64,000 nucleotides of DNA from sequence record NC_020851.1. One strand, 5' to 3'. A program made the translations under genes and the position numbers. The notes under the pieces are model-generated. The model did no database searches, had not been told where the DNA came from, and saw only the letters and a list, made by a program, of their open reading frames with translations. Shown here one piece after another: positions 13,834 to 64,000 of this stretch (positions are counted from its first letter, which is position 1; each line of letters begins with the position of its first letter).

Positions 13834-14037
13834 TGTAAAAACCAGATAAAAGATGAGACGAATAAAAGTTTTTCTTTTGATGTCATGCTGGTGTTACACT
13901 CCATTCATCAGTTGGAACCATTGTGTCAATGACATGCTTAACATTTTCAATTCCGTAAACTACAACCTCCTGAGTTGAAGTGTAACCATTTTTCTTCTCA
14001 CGTTTCCATGAGACAATCCATCGATCACAAGATACTT

Positions 14038-14235
14038 TCATTGTTGAACTGCGGCAATTGTGTGATAAAACATGTAGACACCAAATGATAGAAGAGGAAG
14101 AGGAACAATAACTCCTTGTAAGATAGGATTTTTAATCATATGGACACAAAACATAATCCATCCGACAAAAATACCAGCCGTGGCAACAATGAATGCCATG
14201 GCACCAATTGCCTTAAGAAGAATACCAAAATCCAT
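14038..14235 (-). CDS. Small membrane protein
   Basis: Hydrophobic ORF from MDFGILL; approximate start. Confidence 0.55.
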   Translation of the reverse strand: MDFGILLKAIGAMAFIVATAGIFVGWIMFCVHMIKNPILQGVIVPLPLLSFGVYMFYHTIAAVQQ

Positions 14236-14237
14236 GA

Positions 14238-14627
14238 TCAAGCACCCTGATAGTATGCGTTGCGGTAGAGATATCCACCTGCCCAATCACAATTCTCCAA
14301 CACAAACTCACGTTCTTCGATGATTAGCAGATTGAAACGCACTCCTTTTGCTGGTGCTTTGATTGATGCTGCCTTGTATACTTCACCAGTTTTCTTATCA
14401 ATGAAGGCATGAACTGATTCAGTTTGACCATCGACACACTGCATCACTTTGTGATACTTGCGACCAGAAATCAGTGCATAAGAATAGTTGCGACCACTAT
14501 TTGGATACTGACGTTGATGACTTTGCTGGAGAGCATCACAAAGCATCAGACCATACTTGGTGACATTCAACTGAATGGTGTTCTGAGCATCTTTCTGGGC
14601 AACGTAGTCGGTGAAGGTGGCAGTCAT
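14238..14627 (-). CDS. Conserved cyanophage early protein
   Basis: VHAFIDKKTGEVYKAASIKAPAKGVRFNL motif; probable start MTATF. Confidence 0.7.
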   Translation of the reverse strand: MTATFTDYVAQKDAQNTIQLNVTKYGLMLCDALQQSHQRQYPNSGRNYSYALISGRKYHKVMQCVDGQTESVHAFIDKKTGEVYKAASIKAPAKGVRFNLLIIEEREFVLENCDWAGGYLYRNAYYQGA

Positions 14628-14683
14628 GGTGTTATCTGAACTGTGTTCAGTATAAAGGATTTTGGTGGGGTTTGGTAGAGCAA

Positions 14684-15139
14684 TCATGACACTTTACTAA
14701 CTGGCACAGAAAGAGTTGCTTCAACTTCTTTAATGTTCAAACCACAGAGTTGATTGTAAACTCGATTGACAATGAGATCGGTGGCTCTCTTAGCACGACT
14801 GGTCTCATACCAAATAGTCGTGCAACCATCATAAGTCTCAACACGAATACGGTAGGTCTTGGTGACAGTCATGGGTGGTTTCCCTTGTATGAATGTATTA
14901 TAGAGCATCCTGAGAGGGTTTCAGGATGCTGTGTGACACTTGCCTGACTGTTACATCGCAAGAGATGCGGCACAATCAGAGATTTCTTTCATTCCTTCCT
15001 TGTCAGTCTCTATGTAGAGAAGACCGCATTCATCAATCCACCACCCTTTGATGTAGGCAGTATCTATGTGCATGGTCACGTCGTTGTTGTTTTTGTTGCC
15101 GATTCCACTTGTGAATCCGATACCTTTTGAGTAACTCAT
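14684..15139 (-). other. Two small hypothetical ORFs (14684-about 14872 and 14951-15139)
   Basis: Short co-oriented ORFs separated by an early-promoter hairpin. Confidence 0.5.
14895..14940 (-). promoter_or_regulatory. Early promoter containing a stem-loop (near-identical copy at about 15578-15625)
   Basis: TATAAT -10, 10-bp stem AGCATCCTGA/TCAGGATGCT, and an upstream GTGTCACA element. Confidence 0.7.
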
Positions 15140-55809: not shown

Positions 55810-56388
55810 ATGAGCAATTTTTCTGATAGGGGGTGGTATTACCTTCCTGAAATTATTACTAAAGAAGAAGCAATAAGAGTTAAGTATCAAAATCTTTGTG
55901 GTGCTATGAGTGATTTAGGATCACTTGAAGGGCACTGGGATGAAGAAAGAGGAAGAGTATTAACTTGTTATGCACCACCATCATCCACATTTGTAGTTCA
56001 TAGAGTCAAACCAATTCTTGAAGAACTATTAGGAGAAGAACTTATTCCATCTTACTGGTTCACGACAACTTATCATAACAAAGGTTGGATGAATTGTCAT
56101 ACTGATAGACCCTCATGTGAAATATCAGTTACTATGAATATTTTTGGTGATGCAAAATGGCCTATAAAACTTAAAGATCTTACAGGAAAACGTCAGGAAG
56201 TTGTAACTCCTCCTGGTGATGGTCTTGCATACTTAGGAACAATTGTTCCACATTGGAGAAGTCCATTAAGAACTCATAAGAATGACAGTTTTATGCAACT
56301 CTTTTTACATTATGTAAGAAAGAATGGTCCTTATGCAGACTATGCCTACGATAGAAATCAAAAATGTTATGACTTACTCACCACCTAA
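55810..56388 (+). CDS. 2OG-Fe(II) oxygenase-like protein
   Basis: HTDRPSCEISVT (HxD), HWR, QLFLHY. Confidence 0.8.
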   Translation: MSNFSDRGWYYLPEIITKEEAIRVKYQNLCGAMSDLGSLEGHWDEERGRVLTCYAPPSSTFVVHRVKPILEELLGEELIPSYWFTTTYHNKGWMNCHTDRPSCEISVTMNIFGDAKWPIKLKDLTGKRQEVVTPPGDGLAYLGTIVPHWRSPLRTHKNDSFMQLFLHYVRKNGPYADYAYDRNQKCYDLLTT

Positions 56389-57108
56389 AAGATTTTCTGG
56401 TTCTGGTAATGCAGGAAGAGTATCATTAATCAATACGATAGATCTCAATTTTTGCGAATAATCTTTAGTGATATTTGCATCAACTTCAACTGAAGATGGA
56501 GAAGCAGGGAAAACATCTGTTGTAATTCCCACAGATGGTAAATCTCTTAGAGTAGTTCTCCAATTCTTAAACTCATCGGTTAAGACACTTCCATCCTCTG
56601 TTGTTTTTGTAACAATCCAATCAGTCTCTTTCAAAACTTCATCTCTAATTATTCTTATTTCACCATATCTTTTTTCAGTTTGTCTTGTATCATAATTAGA
56701 AATCTCAGTATTCCATTGTTCTTGAGTTAATATTGTAAGACCATCATTTTCTACAATAGTATTTGTTTCTCTGTAAGTTACGTCATGTACAGTTACTGTG
56801 GTTGTTTCTCCAGTTTCTTCTCTAGTTTCTTCGTTTATAACAGGTTCTTCAAACTGCCTTTCTGTAGAACTTACTACTGTAATATTTGAGTCACTCTGAT
56901 ACTCTGCCAAAACTGCTGGAGTTACAGTTTTTGAATACTCAAAATACTCTGGAACTCTTGATAAACAAATATGATCTCCATTCTCATCTGTTAAACGATA
57001 AACAATTTCCAATCCTTTTAATTTTGGAAATACATATCCTCTTATATCACCTCTTATCCATTCTCCAGTATCTCTATCCACTAAAAAGTGTTTAATTAAT
57101 TGAGACAT
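56374..57108 (-). CDS. Tail-fibre assembly chaperone-like protein
   Basis: C-terminal RDEVLKETDW...WRTTLRDLP...FPASP motif. Confidence 0.6.
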   Translation of the reverse strand: MSQLIKHFLVDRDTGEWIRGDIRGYVFPKLKGLEIVYRLTDENGDHICLSRVPEYFEYSKTVTPAVLAEYQSDSNITVVSSTERQFEEPVINEETREETGETTTVTVHDVTYRETNTIVENDGLTILTQEQWNTEISNYDTRQTEKRYGEIRIIRDEVLKETDWIVTKTTEDGSVLTDEFKNWRTTLRDLPSVGITTDVFPASPSSVEVDANITKDYSQKLRSIVLINDTLPALPEPENLLGGE

Positions 57109-57113
57109 TTTTA

Positions 57114-57775
57114 TCAGTACACATTTATATTGTATTTATCTTCTATCTCTTTATCAATCTCTGCTTTCGTAGGCATACCTTGAACAGTCATCCAGTTTAC
57201 CATTGCATAACGAGTTCCTGAGATGACTGGTTCTACTTTATGAAGATAAAATTGCGAAGATGGAAAAGCAACTAACAATCCTGGTTCTGGTTTAATACGG
57301 ACTCTAAGATCTGGAAATACAAATTCCCCACCTTCAAAATCATCATTTAAAAAAGAATTGTTGATAAGTCTCTGTCTACAGACTTCTTCCATATGATAGA
57401 ACCATCAGGGTTCTTCCACCTTGATACTGCATCATAATGAGATTTATAGTGCCCTCCTGGTTCATATACAAGCAGCTGAGGGACTTCACTATCTCTTATC
57501 TTAAACTCATAAAAAGGATTGATTACATGATGAACAATGTTGTCATAAAGTTCTTTAACTTCACCAATAATTTTTGAGATATCAGAACAATCTACATTTC
57601 TTACACTCAAATCAATCTTTGATGGATGATCTTCTTTGTTTTGATTTGCTTTTTCTCCATCAAACACACCCATCTTATCTTTAGGTGCAATCTTTGCATG
57701 ATTCACTAAGAAATCAATTCCTTCTTTTGATACAACTTTTGGTTGTATCAATACATTTCTAAGTATATCATTCAT
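57114..57775 (-). CDS. Prolyl-4-hydroxylase-like 2OG-Fe(II) oxygenase (one homopolymer frameshift)
   Basis: QLLVYEPGGHYKSHYD...LSTILFLNDDFEGGEF...FPS...HKVEPVISGTRY. Confidence 0.85.
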
Positions 57776-57805
57776 ATCATAATGATGTAGGTATTTTATT
57801 TAGTT

Positions 57806-59658
57806 TTAGTTTGAGAGTGCTGCTAATTCTTTCCTTGCTTGGGTTAAATTATTACCTGGTGCTGATGTAGTCTCATTCGAGAAATCAATACGGTCTATTG
57901 TGTCAACCTGAGGTGGAACATAACCACCACCAAAGTAACCATAAGAACTACTTGAGACTGCACCTAAACCATTTCTTCCTTGAGTTAAGGTAGCAGTTAC
58001 TGGTGATGTAGTCTCATTTGAAAAATCAATACGGTCTATTGTGTCCTTATAATATGACGGAGTGAAAGGTGGAGCAAAACCACCACCAAAGTAACCATAA
58101 GAACTACTTGAGACTGCTGCTAAACTATGTCTTCCTTGAGGTAGATTATTTCCTGGTGCCGATGTAGTCTCATTAGAAAAATCAATACGGTCTACTGTGT
58201 CAAACAGAGATCCACCACCACCAAAGTAACCATAAGAACTACTTGAGACTGCTGCTAACTTATTTCTTGCTTGAGATAAGGTAGCAGTTACTGGTGATGT
58301 AGTCTCATTAGAGAAATCAATACGGTCTATTGTGTCAACCTGAGTTGGAGTACTACCACCACCAAAGTAACCATAAGAACTACTTGAGACTGCTGCTAAA
58401 CCAAATCTTGCTTGAGTTAAATTATTACCTGGTGCCGATGTAGTCTCATTAGAAAAATCAATACGGTCTACTGTGGTAACCTGAGGTGGAGCACTACCAC
58501 CACCAAAGTAACCATAAGAACTACTTGAACATGCTGCTAAATAATATCTTGCTTGAGGTAAATTATTACCTGGTGCTGATGTAGTTTCATTAGAAAAATC
58601 AATACGGTCTACTGTGTTAACAGTAGGAAAACCACCACCACCAAAGTAACCATAAGTTCTTGATCCTTTTATTCTCTCTGATGCTCCTCCGGATACTGCT
58701 GCTAAACCGTATCTTTCTTGAGGTAAATTATTACCTGGTGCCGATGTAGTTTCATTCGAGAAATCAATACGGTCTACTGTGTTAACAGTAGGTGGAGCAG
58801 CACCACCAGCAAAGTAACCATAAGAACTACTTTGGGTTGCTGCTAAAAAACTTCTTCCTTGAGGTAGATTATTAGTCGGTGCCGATGTTGTCTCATTAGA
58901 GAAATCAATACGGTCTACTGTGGTAACAGTAGATGGACTTTCTGCTGGATTTTGACCACCACCAAAGTAACCATAAGAATTACTTGAGGTTCCTGCTAAA
59001 TAACCTCTTGCTTGAGATAAATCACCTATATCTGATACAGTCTCATTAGAGAAATCAAGACGGTCTATTGTATCAAGATAGCTTGGTGATAATCCTGGAT
59101 CTCTACCACCAGCAAAGTAACCATAAGAACTACTTGATACTGCTGCTAAACCTAGTTTTTTGCAGGTAAATTCTCAGCGGCAGCTGATCTAGTCTCATTA
59201 GAGAAATCAATACGGTCTATTGTGGTTCTAAAAGCAGGTACAAGACTCGGAGCCTGACCACCAGCAAAGTAACCATAAGAATTACTTGAGGTTCCTGCTA
59301 AAGAAGCTCTTGCTTCAGGTAAATCACCTCCTGGTAATGATAAAGTCTCATTAGAGAAATCAAGACGTTCGATTGTGGAGACATTAGGTGGAGCAAAACC
59401 ACCACCAAAGTAACCATAAGAACTAGATGAGACTGCTGCTAATTGACTTCTTGCTTCAGGTAAATTATTACCTGGTGCAGATGCAGTTTCATTCGAGAAA
59501 TCAATACGGTCTATTGTATCAAGATAAGTTGATGGTGGAGTAAAAAATCCACCACCAAAGTAACCATAAGTAGCACTCTCTGGCCAACTTTCAAAGTTGT
59601 CGTTTGCAATATTCTTTATCTGTTCTGTTCTAACTTCGTTGAGAGAAAATATTGCCAT
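57806..59658 (-). CDS. Kelch-like repeat (double beta-propeller) protein, paralog 1, about 617 aa after repairing one deletion
   Basis: Tandem about 47-aa repeats YGYFGGG-var-DRIDFSNET..PG.NLP.AR..LAAVSSS; frameshift in the A run at about 59156. Confidence 0.8.
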
Positions 59659-60489
59659 TTATAATCCGAAGACAGAATACCTTTGAGTTCTCTGTTTTTT
59701 CCAGAACTCCATATGATTATATTTATTCATAATATTCTCCGAAAGATACTTTGTATTATCACGATGTATTTTTTCTACTGTATCTCGGACATTATGCATA
59801 TTTTCTAACTTATAAACATTATCATTCTCATCTTGTTTGGTAGAAACATTCTCAAAACTATGACAATAAGATGATAACCCTATAAATTCATAGATACGAT
59901 TAAGTTCTTGTTGAGGATTTCTTACCAAATCATCATAATCAATAAGTAATAAGTATTGATTGTTTCCTTTTCTAAAGCATTCTAATAGAGCATTATATGA
60001 TTGCCCTATAATTCCTTCTGGAGACATTAGATAATCAGAACGATTATCATTTGAGATTTCTATGTCGTTTCTCATAAGACCTTCATCAATAAATGATGTA
60101 GTATTTGACTTATAAATCAGATTTAAAAATGAAGATAAAATGTCCTGAATGTTTCTTACGGGACAGATAATTTTTGGTTCAGTTGTGATGTAGTCCTGAA
60201 TGTGTTGTATTTGATTGACCCAACCTCTTGACTTATCAATAATAATGTTCTGAGAAGTATTGAAATAATAATTATAAGGTATAGAAGATAATACCTTATA
60301 AGCACCTTCGGGGTTTGGTGTTGCTTTATATTGTTCTGAATTGTATAAGAGATACTCTTCAGTATAATGAATTGTATCTAACAAAGGTGAGTTTGTAGAT
60401 GCGTGTATCTCTGGGTTCTGATTAAGTAATGCAGTTAATAAAGTCGAACCTGATCTTGGAAGACCAGACATAAAATAAAATTGTTTCAT
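59659..60489 (-). CDS. Sulfotransferase
   Basis: PAPS-binding GLPRSGSTLL, DKSRGW, PVRNIQDILSS, YDDLV..P. Confidence 0.85.
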   Translation of the reverse strand: MKQFYFMSGLPRSGSTLLTALLNQNPEIHASTNSPLLDTIHYTEEYLLYNSEQYKATPNPEGAYKVLSSIPYNYYFNTSQNIIIDKSRGWVNQIQHIQDYITTEPKIICPVRNIQDILSSFLNLIYKSNTTSFIDEGLMRNDIEISNDNRSDYLMSPEGIIGQSYNALLECFRKGNNQYLLLIDYDDLVRNPQQELNRIYEFIGLSSYCHSFENVSTKQDENDNVYKLENMHNVRDTVEKIHRDNTKYLSENIMNKYNHMEFWKKQRTQRYSVFGL

Positions 60490-60492
60490 AAA

Positions 60493-62338
60493 TTAGTTTG
60501 AGACTGCTGCTAAAGCAGATCTTCCTTCAGGTAAAGTAGCAGTTACTGGTGATGTAGTCTCATTAGAGAAATCAATACGGTCTATTGTGTCAGGATTAGT
60601 TTGACCACCACCAAGGTAACCATAAGAACTACTTGAGGTTGATCCAAAAAAGCTTTTGTTTGAGGTAGATTATTACCTGGTGCTGATACAGTCTCATTAG
60701 AGAAATCAATACGGTCTATTGTGTCAACCTGAGTTGGAGTACTACCACCAGCAAAGTAACCATAAGAACTACTTGAGACTGCACCTAAACCATTTCTTCC
60801 TTGAGATAAAGTAGCAGTTACTGGTGATGTAGTCTCATTAGAGAAGTCAATACGGTCTATTGTGTCCTTATAAAATGACGGAGTGAAAGGTGGAGCAAAA
60901 CCACCACCAAAGTAACCATAAGAACTACTTGAGACTGCTGCTAAACTATTTCTTCCTTGAGGTAGATTATTTCCTGGTGCCGATGTAGTCTCATTAGAAA
61001 ATCAATACGGTCTACTGTGGTAACCTGAGGTGGAGCACTACCACCACCAAAGTAACCATAAGAACTACTTGAGACTGCTGCTAAATTACTTCTTGCTTGA
61101 GGTAAAGTAGCAGTTACTGGTGATGTAGTCTCATTAGAGAAATCAATACGGTCTATTGTGTCAACCTGAGTTGGAGTACCACCACCAGCAAAGTAACCAT
61201 AAGAACTACTTGAGACTGCTGCTAAACCAGATCTTGCTTGAGGTAGATTATCACCTGGTGCTGATGTAGTCTCATTAGAGAAATCAATACGGTCTATTGT
61301 ATTAACAGTTTGACCACCACCAAAGTAACCATAAGTTCTTGAACCTTTTATTCTCTCTGATGCTCCTCCAGAGACTGCTGCTAAATCACGTCTTGCTTGA
61401 GATAAGGTATCAGTTACTGGTGATGTAGTTTCATTAGAGAAATCAATACGGTCTATTGTGTCAGCATAAGGTGGAGCAAAACCACCACCAAAGTAACCAT
61501 AAGAACTACTTGAGACTGCTGCTAAACTAGATCTTGCTTGAGATAGGTTATTACCTGGTGCTGATGTGGTCTCATTTGAGAAATCAATACGGTCTACTGT
61601 GCCAACAAAAGGTGTAGCATAACCACCACCAAAGTAACCATAAGAACTACTTGAGACTGCTGCTAAACCAAATCTTCCTTCAGGTAAAGTAGCAGTTACT
61701 GGTGATGTAGTTTCATTAGAAAAATCAATACGGTCTATTGCAAAGTCTGGTGATAATCCACCACCAAAGTAACCATAAGAACTATTTGAGACTGTTGCTA
61801 AATAATATCTTGCTTGAGGTAGATTATTTCCTGGTGCCGATGTAGTCTCATTAGAGAAATCTAAACGGTCGATTGTGTTAACAGTAGATGGACTTTCTGC
61901 TGGACTTTGACCACCACCAAAGTAACCATAAGAATTACTTGAGGTTCCTGCTAAAAAAGCTCTTACTTGAGGTAGATTATTACCTGGTGCTGATGCAGTC
62001 TCATTAGAGAAATCAATACGGTCTACTGTGTTAACATAAGATGGTGATAATCCTAGATCTCTACCACCACCAAAGTAACCATAAGAACTACTTGATACTA
62101 CTGCTAAAGCATATTTAACTAGAGATAGATTATTACCTGGTGCTGATGCAGTTTCATTCGAGAAATCAATACGGTCTACTGTGTTAACAGTAGATGGACT
62201 TTCTGCTGGATTTTGACCACCACCAAAGTAACCATAAGTAGCACTCTCTGGCCAACTTTCAAAGTTGTTATTGTCTATATTTTCTACCTGTTTCTCGTAA
62301 ATAGAAGTTAATCCAAATACGTCTCCTATGATAGCCAT
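60493..62338 (-). CDS. Kelch-like repeat protein, paralog 2 (12 repeats, about 615 aa after repairing two deletions)
   Basis: 6+6 repeats joined by GGASERIKGSR; frameshifts at about 61000 and about 60650. Confidence 0.8.
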
Positions 62339-62344
62339 AAGATT

Positions 62345-63181
62345 TTACTGTTTTAATTCTTGGTTAAATAATGATCCATTAAGTTGCTTCTTTTCTTCAT
62401 CCTCAATAGATGAAAGAATTTTTTGATCCATACCAGTAATTTCAGAAATACCGGCAGTAACATTTTCCTGTAGTTTACTTAAGAAATCAAGAGGATTAGT
62501 TGGATCACCAAATGATCCTTTAGTTCTATTCACATCATTCCCTAATACAGTAGGAGCACTTGCTCTTCTCATAGAACGAATATTACCAGCATTCACACCA
62601 GTTTTTGCAGCAAACAAATCGTCAATAGATTGATTCGAAAGTCTTCTCTCCCAATAGTCTGGTTGATCTGCATCAAACTGCTCTTTATTAACTAATTTAC
62701 CACCATTTAATTCAATCAAACGACTGATCAACTTATCAAAACATTCAAGTTCTTGAACTGATGCCTTGAAACCATGATTAAGTCCTTCAAGCATACGATG
62801 AAAATGAAACTCATCAATATCATACCAACATAATTCTTCACCACCATCACGGGTTTTCCACCAGATTGGTTGAGTCTTATCCTTTCCTTCCCACTTATAA
62901 TGAAACTCTCTTGCTTCTTTCTTTGCACTAATGATTTTAGAAAGAAGACCTTCTGCTACACTCTTACGATTGATTAAAGCAGCCTTAAATGCAGATGGAA
63001 TTGTAAAAGTATCATGAATAATAAACTTTTCAATTTGAAAATCTGAACGACCTTGTGCGAGTTCTACTTCACTTTCAGTCCAACGATTTGCTTCATTCAG
63101 AACCTTAAACATAAATTCATTCTTATCATCCAAAACTTCCGTAGAAGACGCAAGTGCAATTGCTTCATAATTGTTAGTCAT
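62345..63181 (-). CDS. Unknown helical protein associated with the propeller genes
   Basis: 278-aa ORF preceded by the late promoter TATAAATA at 63213-63220. Confidence 0.65.
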   Translation of the reverse strand: MTNNYEAIALASSTEVLDDKNEFMFKVLNEANRWTESEVELAQGRSDFQIEKFIIHDTFTIPSAFKAALINRKSVAEGLLSKIISAKKEAREFHYKWEGKDKTQPIWWKTRDGGEELCWYDIDEFHFHRMLEGLNHGFKASVQELECFDKLISRLIELNGGKLVNKEQFDADQPDYWERRLSNQSIDDLFAAKTGVNAGNIRSMRRASAPTVLGNDVNRTKGSFGDPTNPLDFLSKLQENVTAGISEITGMDQKILSSIEDEEKKQLNGSLFNQELKQ

Positions 63182-63212: not shown

Positions 63213-63220
63213 TATTTATA
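63213..63220 (-). promoter_or_regulatory. T4-type late promoter
   Basis: Perfect TATAAATA; ATAAATA/CTAAATA variants also precede the genes at 27516, 33707, 44397, 45161, 45202, 46397 and 57108. Confidence 0.7.
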
Positions 63221-63234
63221 TTCTTATAATGATA

Positions 63235-64000
63235 TGTTTAGTTTGAGACTGCTGCTAATTCATCTCTTGCTTGAGATAAATTATTTCCTGGTGCTGATGT
63301 AGTCTCATTTGAGAAATCTAAACGGTCGATTGTGTTGACAAAAGGTGGAGTCTCACCACCACCAAAGTAACCATAAGAACTACTTGAGACTGCTGCTAAA
63401 TTCTGTCTTGCTTGAGGTAAATTATTTCCTGGTGCTGATGTAGTCTCATTTGAGAAATCAATACGGTCGATTGTGGAGACATTAGGTGGACCACCACCAC
63501 CAAAGTAACCATAATTGGCATTAGAGACTGCTGCTAAATTCTGTCTTGCTTGAGGTAAATTATTTCCTGGTGCTGATGTAGTCTCATTTGAGAAATCAAT
63601 ACGGTCGATTGTGGAGACAAAAGGTGGAGCAAAACCACCACCAAAGTAACCATAAGAACTACTTGAGACTGCTGCTAAACTATCTCTTGCTTGAGATAAA
63701 TTATTTCCTGGTGCTGATGTAGTCTCATTAGAGAAATCAAGACGGTCGATTGTGGAGACATTAGGTGGAGCAAAACCACCACCAAAGTAACCATAAGAAC
63801 TATTTGAGACTGCTGCTAAACCTCGTCTTGCTTGAGATAAATTATTTCCTGGTGCTGATGTAGTCTCATTAGAGAAATCAAGACGGTCGATTGTGTTGAC
63901 AAAGGTGAGTCTCACCACCACCAAAGTAACCATAAGAACTACTTGAGACTGCTGCTAAATTCTGTCTTGCTTGAGGTAAATTATTTCCTGGTGCTGATGT
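63235..64000 (-). CDS. Kelch-like repeat protein, paralog 3 (5' end outside the window)
   Basis: Same repeat unit; the ORF-track start at 63933 results from a GG-to-G deletion at about 63906. Confidence 0.8.

Follow-up and report, generated by a model that had tools for sequence, protein, structure and literature searches.

What do the enzymes encoded between the propeller genes of a cyanophage tail-fibre module act on? This question is raised by a 64-kb stretch of DNA (the window), which proved to be 100% identical to positions 144008–208007, the final 64 kb, of the record of Synechococcus phage S-SKS1 (NC_020851/HQ633071; host, Synechococcus WH7803). Positions given below are window coordinates (record coordinate minus 144007). 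Read along the minus strand, the array consists of genes for a propeller protein (paralog 3), a 278-amino-acid (aa) protein (G278), propeller paralog 2, a sulfotransferase, propeller paralog 1, a prolyl 4-hydroxylase (P4H)-like oxygenase of the 2-oxoglutarate (2OG)-Fe(II) type and a tail-fibre chaperone-like protein. An earlier reading based on the letters alone (the sequence-only reading) had placed these genes correctly and had proposed a late-expressed system that decorates virion surface proteins by prolyl hydroxylation and sulfation. One element of this idea finds support: a conserved cassette, a shared phyletic pattern, fusions and abutting genes speak for enzymes that belong functionally with the propellers. 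As for the decoration itself, the virion location of the propellers, their late expression, the enzyme–substrate relation and the modified residues are what we infer from the genes, and hydroxylation and sulfation of propellers is a reading that we favour tentatively.

To define the cassette, we compared S-SKS1 with 44 metagenomic loci from IMG/VR, collected by scanning viral contigs with the sulfotransferase (72–94% identical). These close relatives share the order fibre gene, a 2OG-FeII_Oxy_5 oxygenase gene (Oxy_5, present sometimes), a GT-A-like glycosyltransferase gene (usually present), propeller, cassette, propeller, cassette, propeller, P4H-like gene and chaperone gene, with a gene for a 192-aa protein on the opposite strand. 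One of the two middle cassettes is the sulfotransferase, the other G278, accompanied in most relatives by a GT4 glycosyltransferase, and they occur in either order. The N-terminal class of each propeller depended on the preceding gene, independent of the position in the array, as observed for all propellers after G278 (35/35), after the sulfotransferase (34/34) and after GT-A or Oxy_5 (23/23; 92/92 altogether). Because the N-terminal class is fixed by the upstream gene, the shuffled unit can be described as an enzyme gene plus the propeller gene downstream. The interleaved order was thus as the sequence-only reading had stated, but the stable pair is enzyme then propeller and not, as it had supposed, propeller then enzyme. 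In S-SKS1, Oxy_5 (just outside the window) precedes the class a propeller, G278 the class b propeller and the sulfotransferase the class c propeller, while the P4H-like gene follows the last propeller. Propeller number varies, since the middle one is reduced to a 78-aa remnant or missing in contigs L013–L018 (about 4461–4685 in L013) and L050, where the flanking enzyme genes are retained.

Does the association extend beyond close relatives? A search of 1.8 billion representative proteins with the sulfotransferase returned 194 clusters at E ≤ 1e-30, and the same set of Kelch-like propellers, sulfotransferase, P4H-like enzyme and GT4 with G278 was found in at least four divergent phage lineages. 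In the marine virus AG-345-L05 (sulfotransferase 39% identical), three propellers of 916–968 aa are interleaved with genes for DUF6445 proteins, two sulfotransferases, a GT-A-like protein, an intact P4H, a GT9-like protein and a NodU-like carbamoyltransferase; a single 631-aa protein of this virus represents GT4 fused to a G278 homolog. AG-345-O18 (sulfotransferase 45% identical) carries propeller, DUF6445, propeller, sulfotransferase and P4H genes, followed by genes that resemble an ADP-heptose pathway. Judged by eye, the latter (L005:6037-8597, 13993-14940) look like cytidylyltransferase-like, sugar kinase, phosphatase, cupin and epimerase genes, with a GT9-like gene, and their neighbours include genes for two proteins very rich in cysteine (758 and 290 aa). 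Fusions were found in other combinations as well. A 500-aa protein (P0127) combines sulfotransferase and P4H (42% and 34% identity); its gene, on a T4-like contig (L052), comes immediately behind that of a 305-aa propeller which belongs to the same family and has six blades. P0163 is a sulfotransferase–GT4 fusion. Contig L053 contains a propeller, an APS-kinase-like gene (APS, adenosine 5'-phosphosulfate), a sulfotransferase, a GT4–G278 fusion, two propellers, P4H and a chaperone-like gene, and in L060 the C-terminus of a propeller is followed by a sulfotransferase. P0163, P0125 and P0130 are known as proteins alone, and contigs L055, L056 and L061 are too short to show propeller proximity. 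Because the fusions join sulfotransferase to P4H, sulfotransferase to GT4 and GT4 to G278, these sequences argue that the four proteins very probably work in one pathway.

The phyletic pattern points in the same direction. Among 50,697 phage records, the propeller family, the full-length P4H orthologs (E ≤ 1e-61; next match 6e-21) and the three best sulfotransferase matches all occurred in S-SKS1, AG-345-L05 and AG-345-O18. Distant sulfotransferases break the pattern, as the copy of phage S-SCSM1 (26% identical) is not located near propellers. We rejected S-SRM01 and AG-345-E08 as members of the cassette family: their islands combine propellers with sulfotransferase, P4H or other 2OG enzymes, DUF6445 and glycosyltransferases, but these propellers consist of true RCC1 repeats, and we regard the islands as analogues. 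That the pathway is likely tied to the propeller genes is suggested by their repeated adjacency, by the phyletic pattern they have in common and by the match between N-terminal classes and upstream genes. The opposite view would be that the enzyme genes are passengers, accumulated at gene boundaries of a recombination-prone fibre region and without functional link to the propellers. Indeed, hyperplasticity and an abundance of 2OG oxygenases characterise the fibre regions of cyanophages (PMC3037559), a single lineage accounts for the majority of the 44 loci, and the 192-aa and Oxy_5 families are widespread in cyanophages without propellers, for which reason we treat these two genes as weak members of the proposed system. 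However, passengers would hardly account for three or four enzyme families recurring with propellers in at least five divergent lineages, for enzymes fused to each other or for one phyletic pattern among all the phage records, and we consider this explanation quite improbable.

Having delimited the cassette, we turned to the chemistry of its enzymes. The sulfotransferase (59659–60489, minus strand, 276 aa) matched the Pfam families Sulfotransfer_3 (61.0 bits, cut-off 27; 2.5e-16) and Sulfotransfer_1 (58.5 bits, cut-off 22; 9e-16). A 5'-phosphosulfate-binding loop and a 3'-phosphate-binding R-x7-S motif define the family of sulfotransferases that depend on 3'-phosphoadenosine-5'-phosphosulfate (PAPS). 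Both are present as G9-L-P-R-S-G-S-T16 (with the PRSGST loop) and R112...S120, and both are invariant in homologs 31–100% identical. The best matches of the family profile among solved structures were the protein-tyrosine sulfotransferases TPST1 (3.1e-10) and TPST2 (1e-7), while cytosolic sulfotransferases scored worse than 1e-3. RaxST is a bacterial protein-tyrosine sulfotransferase. In marine metagenomes, we found 825 relatives of the phage enzyme. In contig L053 (1258–2052), an APS-kinase-like P-loop domain (Pfam 1.3e-11) with a weak cytidylyltransferase-like part is encoded just upstream of the sulfotransferase, which suggests that some phages may supply their own PAPS.

One further relative, 31% identical to the phage enzyme, is encoded on a high-GC bacterial contig (L057:3-6612), where it is flanked by two HlyD-type proteins, one of them bearing a peptidase M50 part, and a TolC-like outer-membrane protein, a layout reminiscent of peptide sulfation/export systems. 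Such an environment would be in line with a different product, namely a small molecule or free peptide that is made or tailored in infection, carries hydroxyl or sulfate groups and has nothing to do with the virion, and secondary-metabolite roles have been proposed for tandem cyanophage dioxygenases, arrays of which were read as metabolite pathways (Iyer et al. 2010, PMC2938197). However, no precursor-peptide or synthetase gene was present in any cassette, and the tight linkage with structural genes would be left unexplained. We therefore assign little probability to a small-molecule product.

The second core enzyme is encoded at 57114–57775 (minus strand). Its C-terminal open reading frame (ORF) in the window matched Pfam 2OG-FeII_Oxy_3 with 37.8 bits (cut-off 27), and an intact relative reached 60.7 bits. 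Solved prolyl 3- and 4-hydroxylases were the best matches of the family profile (1e-9 to 4e-9). The Fe(II) triad H-x-D...H and the 2OG-binding arginine are invariant (H113, D115, H179 and R189) and spread over both halves of the S-SKS1 gene, so that its assignment as a prolyl 4-hydroxylase-like 2OG-Fe(II) oxygenase is supported by sequence. Like prolyl 4-hydroxylases of the collagen type, of Bacillus anthracis and of the PKHD/PiuC type, it thus combines an above-threshold 2OG-FeII_Oxy_3 domain with an invariant H-x-D...H...R pattern, but identity of the S-SKS1 enzyme to them is low and PKHD-type relatives score nearly as well.

The gene appears in two halves because one base is missing from a run of T at about 57349, which splits it into ORFs of 142 and 92 aa. 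The three propeller genes are frame-broken as well (about 59160, 60998, 60645 and 63900), and every break corresponds to one base too few in a homopolymer run of T, A or C. In relatives, the genes are intact, with propellers encoded by single ORFs of 600–650 aa and P4H by 222–228 aa, and contigs from three marine metagenomes showed one extra base at 57348/57349, which restores the P4H frame. The original sequencing likely undercalled these homopolymers; changes that arose in the laboratory stock are a less likely cause. At 59160, a slippery-looking A_AAA_AAC followed by a stop could be mistaken for a programmed –1 frameshift. We rejected this interpretation because all of the breaks share a homopolymer context and the genes of relatives are each read as one uninterrupted ORF, and real slippage or phase variation at this site would be very improbable. 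With five or six single-base homopolymer deficits within 7 kb, other S-SKS1 genes described as 'split' or 'truncated' may reflect the same sequencing artefact.

The putative substrates are three paralogs that measure about 620 aa and contain some 12 Kelch-like blades each; regular blades (32 were parsed) span about 47 aa. Propeller 2 (60493–62338, minus strand; class b, GDVFGL N-terminus; breaks at about 60998 and 60645) matched phrog_19111 (9e-254), and the Kelch profile PF24681 scored marginally (50.9 bits, cut-off 50). Propeller 1 (57806–59658, minus strand; class c, FSLxE N-terminus; break at about 59160 in a run of A) has a start codon that abuts the sulfotransferase stop. Propeller 3 (class a; break at about 63900) is represented in the window by its C-terminal part (63238–64000, minus strand); the gene leaves the window at 64000, crosses the record junction and starts at record position 1226, and the beginning of the record codes for its first 408 residues. 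Each blade has a variable loop that separates the GGG motif from the IDR strand, and over the 32 blades these loops contain 20% Pro, 12% Ser, 9% Thr and 5% Tyr, in agreement with the composition claimed by the sequence-only reading. A short N-terminal motif, approximately G-(I/V)-(F/W)-x-L-x-x-V-Y/R-x-x-Q, is common to Kelch-like and RCC1-like propellers (the window, L004, L005, L052, L053 and L062). The shared motif would be consistent with fibre-tip modules that are interchangeable and dock through a common peptide, and we regard the propellers as putative host-binding proteins.

Several findings led us to favour the assumption that the enzymes decorate the co-encoded propellers, although we hold it tentatively and as a prediction. 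The two core enzymes are nearest to protein-modifying families, and both look cytoplasmic because, as read from the sequences by eye, their catalytic domains begin at the very start and no leader precedes them. S-SKS1 keeps both despite lacking sugar transferases, and a similar logic of hydroxylation followed by sulfation had been predicted by Iyer et al. (2010). Other observations weigh against propeller decoration. Presence of the propellers in the virion and their modification are deductions from the genes, and the synteny of the 44 loci, most of which are one lineage, is partly inheritance. The P4H-like gene lacks an intact frame in the deposited sequence, and the base is likewise missing from contigs of the probable source runs. 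GT4 and GT-A are absent from S-SKS1 and its nearest relatives, and no APS kinase gene was found in a search of the S-SKS1 record. The conserved prolines and tyrosines of the blades are probably structural. AlphaFold models made from shallow alignments were too poor for testing substrate clefts, with a mean predicted local distance difference test (pLDDT) score of 52 for the sulfotransferase and 54 for G278, the latter mostly helical at low confidence.

The resemblance to TPST has limits as well. It extends over two segments and includes the conserved PAPS-binding motifs, but is confined to the PAPS-binding parts, and a tyrosine target flanked by acidic residues is not evident. The CGEET stretch, which we take to be the location of the catalytic Glu of TPST, aligned with a non-acidic a-s-p-n-S-P in the phage family (HMMER; modest alignment reliability there). 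We thus did not class the phage sulfotransferase as a TPST.

Finally, related cassettes hold genes of the polysaccharide or lipopolysaccharide (LPS) type, including those of the ADP-heptose pathway, GT9-like, GT4 and GT-A-like transferases, a NodU-like carbamoyltransferase and sugar epimerases, which fit glycan targets. They lead to the main and serious rival of propeller decoration: the enzymes might remodel glycans of the host envelope (LPS or another surface polysaccharide), perhaps the receptors of the propellers, and thereby block superinfection or keep progeny from adhering to debris. In that case, every receptor-binding protein would be accompanied by an enzyme masking the corresponding receptor, which would also account for the enzyme–propeller pairing. 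Moreover, published work usually interprets such cyanophage genes as modifiers of the host surface (PMC12801897). On the other hand, the P4H-like and TPST-like enzymes are closest to enzymes that modify proteins, a single protein encoded immediately behind a propeller gene unites sulfotransferase and P4H, and S-SKS1 retains both enzymes without glycosyltransferases. On balance, we consider an envelope target unlikely.

Other structural proteins of the module, such as LamG-type or collagen-like fibres, might also serve as substrates in place of the propellers. Large fibre genes lie directly upstream, and in many relatives long fibres with Gly-X-Y repeats are encoded beside the cassette (L027:1627-6084; L031:38-2002, 14056-15103; L041:16003-17901; L045:5911-7572; L047:526-3987). 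These repeats (G-T-Q, G-L-Q, G-I-Q) comprise up to 185 triplets and are free of proline, and a search of the S-SKS1 window and of the initial 25 kb of its record found no Gly-X-Y repeats. We therefore rejected collagen-like fibres as the hydroxylase substrate. Since, in addition, pairing and adjacency are with the propellers, modification of other fibres seems very unlikely.

If propeller decoration is correct, the following scheme can be envisaged. Modification of the propellers would take place in the cytoplasm at a late stage of infection, prior to assembly or in the course of it, and the propellers would probably dock to the virion by the short shared N-terminal motif, the array being closed by the chaperone. 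In S-SKS1, the modification would consist of hydroxylation and sulfation; in relatives, glycosylation would occur as well. A plausible target are the Pro/Ser/Thr-rich loops, which would form one face of each propeller. According to a more specific version, each propeller would be matched to its own upstream enzyme, so that one is sulfated, one glycosylated via GT4 and G278 and one hydroxylated, and recombination would reshuffle the enzyme-plus-propeller units; we regard this version as doubtful. The purposes suggested by the sequence-only reading, that is, tuning of host binding and evasion of grazing or defence, are speculation.

How does the proposed system compare with known ones? Other systems are known in which viruses themselves encode the decoration of virion proteins. 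For mycobacteriophages, Freeman et al. reportedly found in 2023 that phage-encoded glycosyltransferases decorate virion proteins, namely the C-termini of capsid and tail-tube proteins. As there, the transferase genes adjoin structural genes and cytoplasmic decoration of virion proteins is proposed; unlike there, S-SKS1 encodes a sulfotransferase and a hydroxylase, and the candidate targets, deduced from the genes, are propellers at the fibre end. The closest precedent is provided by bacterial operons of a 2OG dioxygenase and a sulfotransferase, which were predicted by Iyer, Abhiman, de Souza, Burroughs and Aravind in 2010 to hydroxylate and then sulfate co-encoded phage-tail-collar/collagen-like proteins (PMC2938197). 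Both systems combine a 2OG-Fe(II) dioxygenase and a P-loop sulfotransferase, sometimes fused, with a non-enzymatic, phage-tail-like putative substrate, and both are predictions. In our case, however, the genes belong to a tail-fibre module of phage genomes, the partner is a Kelch-like propeller (RCC1-like in other phages) instead of a tail-collar/collagen-like protein, and the dioxygenase is P4H-like and not of the beta-hydroxylase or PhyH type. The cyanophage 'hyperplastic region' (PMC3037559, PMC12801897) represents the same neighbourhood and contains the same superfamilies (2OG oxygenases, glycosyltransferases and epimerases), but the two papers are without the cassette of propeller, sulfotransferase, P4H and GT4/G278, its fusions or the pairing. 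Likewise, our literature search found no paper describing the cassette, the enzyme fusions or the enzyme–propeller pairing.

The remaining genes of the array were examined as well. G278 (62345–63181, minus strand), which is fused to or preceded by GT4 in relatives, gave no match in Pfam, NCBIfam, Atlas or PDB profiles. Matches to OXA beta-lactamases (E about 0.05) covered 35 residues and were dismissed as chance-like, and the C-terminal half of GT4 proteins of about 570 aa was ruled out as a G278 paralog. We found 520 relatives of G278 in marine metagenomes, and its identity amounts to 70–93% among relatives whose propellers vary far more. The last gene of the array (56374–57108, minus strand) encodes a 244-aa chaperone-like protein that matched phrog_4912 'tail fiber assembly' (1.4e-88); Pfam Phage_tail_APC remained under its cut-off (22.9 versus 26.6 bits). 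Converging on it is the plus-strand gene of the 192-aa protein (55810–56388), a member of the cyanophage family phrog_2954 with the label 'ferrochelatase'; nrdC comes next. The 192-aa protein shows an invariant H97-x-D99...H148 pattern, and weak language-model neighbours point to 2OG oxygenases. Profile tests failed to support this assignment: Pfam and NCBIfam gave no match, PDB profiles gave E > 0.2 and hhalign against the P4H profile a probability of 0.5%. Of the two 2OG oxygenases named by the sequence-only reading, the P4H-like one could thus be supported, but not the 192-aa protein, which is encoded on the opposite strand.

The late-type promoters assumed in the same reading were recovered in part. 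In a T4-type late transcription unit, the motif would be expected about 10–35 nt ahead of every gene start. An exact T4-type late-promoter-like motif, TATAAATA, was located in this region only before the G278 gene (63213–63220, minus strand; about 32 nt upstream), and its three exact occurrences in the whole window (5.5 expected by chance) show no excess. Relaxed motifs lie 26–28 nt before the gene starts of the P4H-like protein (CTAAATA, 57797–57803, minus strand; about 28 nt upstream) and the 192-aa protein (ATAAATA). The sulfotransferase, chaperone and propeller 1 and 2 genes, however, are 0–6 nt from the upstream gene, which leaves no room for a promoter, and this spacing suggests that the abutting genes may be co-transcribed with the propellers.

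Beyond the record junction, upstream on the same strand, lie the genes for the 2OG-FeII_Oxy_5 oxygenase, fibre proteins (one of 368 aa and LamG-type proteins of 470–960 aa), a second chaperone and a baseplate wedge protein, from which we conclude that the array is the far end of the S-SKS1 tail-fibre module. The last (63977–64000) and the first nucleotides of the record (record positions 1–24), about 23 nt, are the same sequence except for a TTT/TT difference. Since end and start share this sequence, the linear record was cut inside propeller 3, within the repeat; the S-SKS1 genome is probably circularly permuted, with propeller 3 annotated as two fragments.

The function of phage sulfotransferases was called unclear in 2023 (PMC10580990). 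They and many cyanophage 2OG oxygenases are without an established role, and the cassette bears on both. It is abundant in marine metagenomes and offers a candidate substrate in a cultured pair, S-SKS1 and Synechococcus WH7803. Should the target be the host envelope instead, the enzyme–propeller pairing would point to receptor masking. If each propeller is indeed matched to its own enzyme, this would represent the first sulfated, hydroxyproline-bearing phage virion protein and give phage sulfotransferases a function. Decoration of the propellers would, in any form, add the chemical modification of receptor-binding proteins as a new layer of host-range variation in ocean cyanophages.

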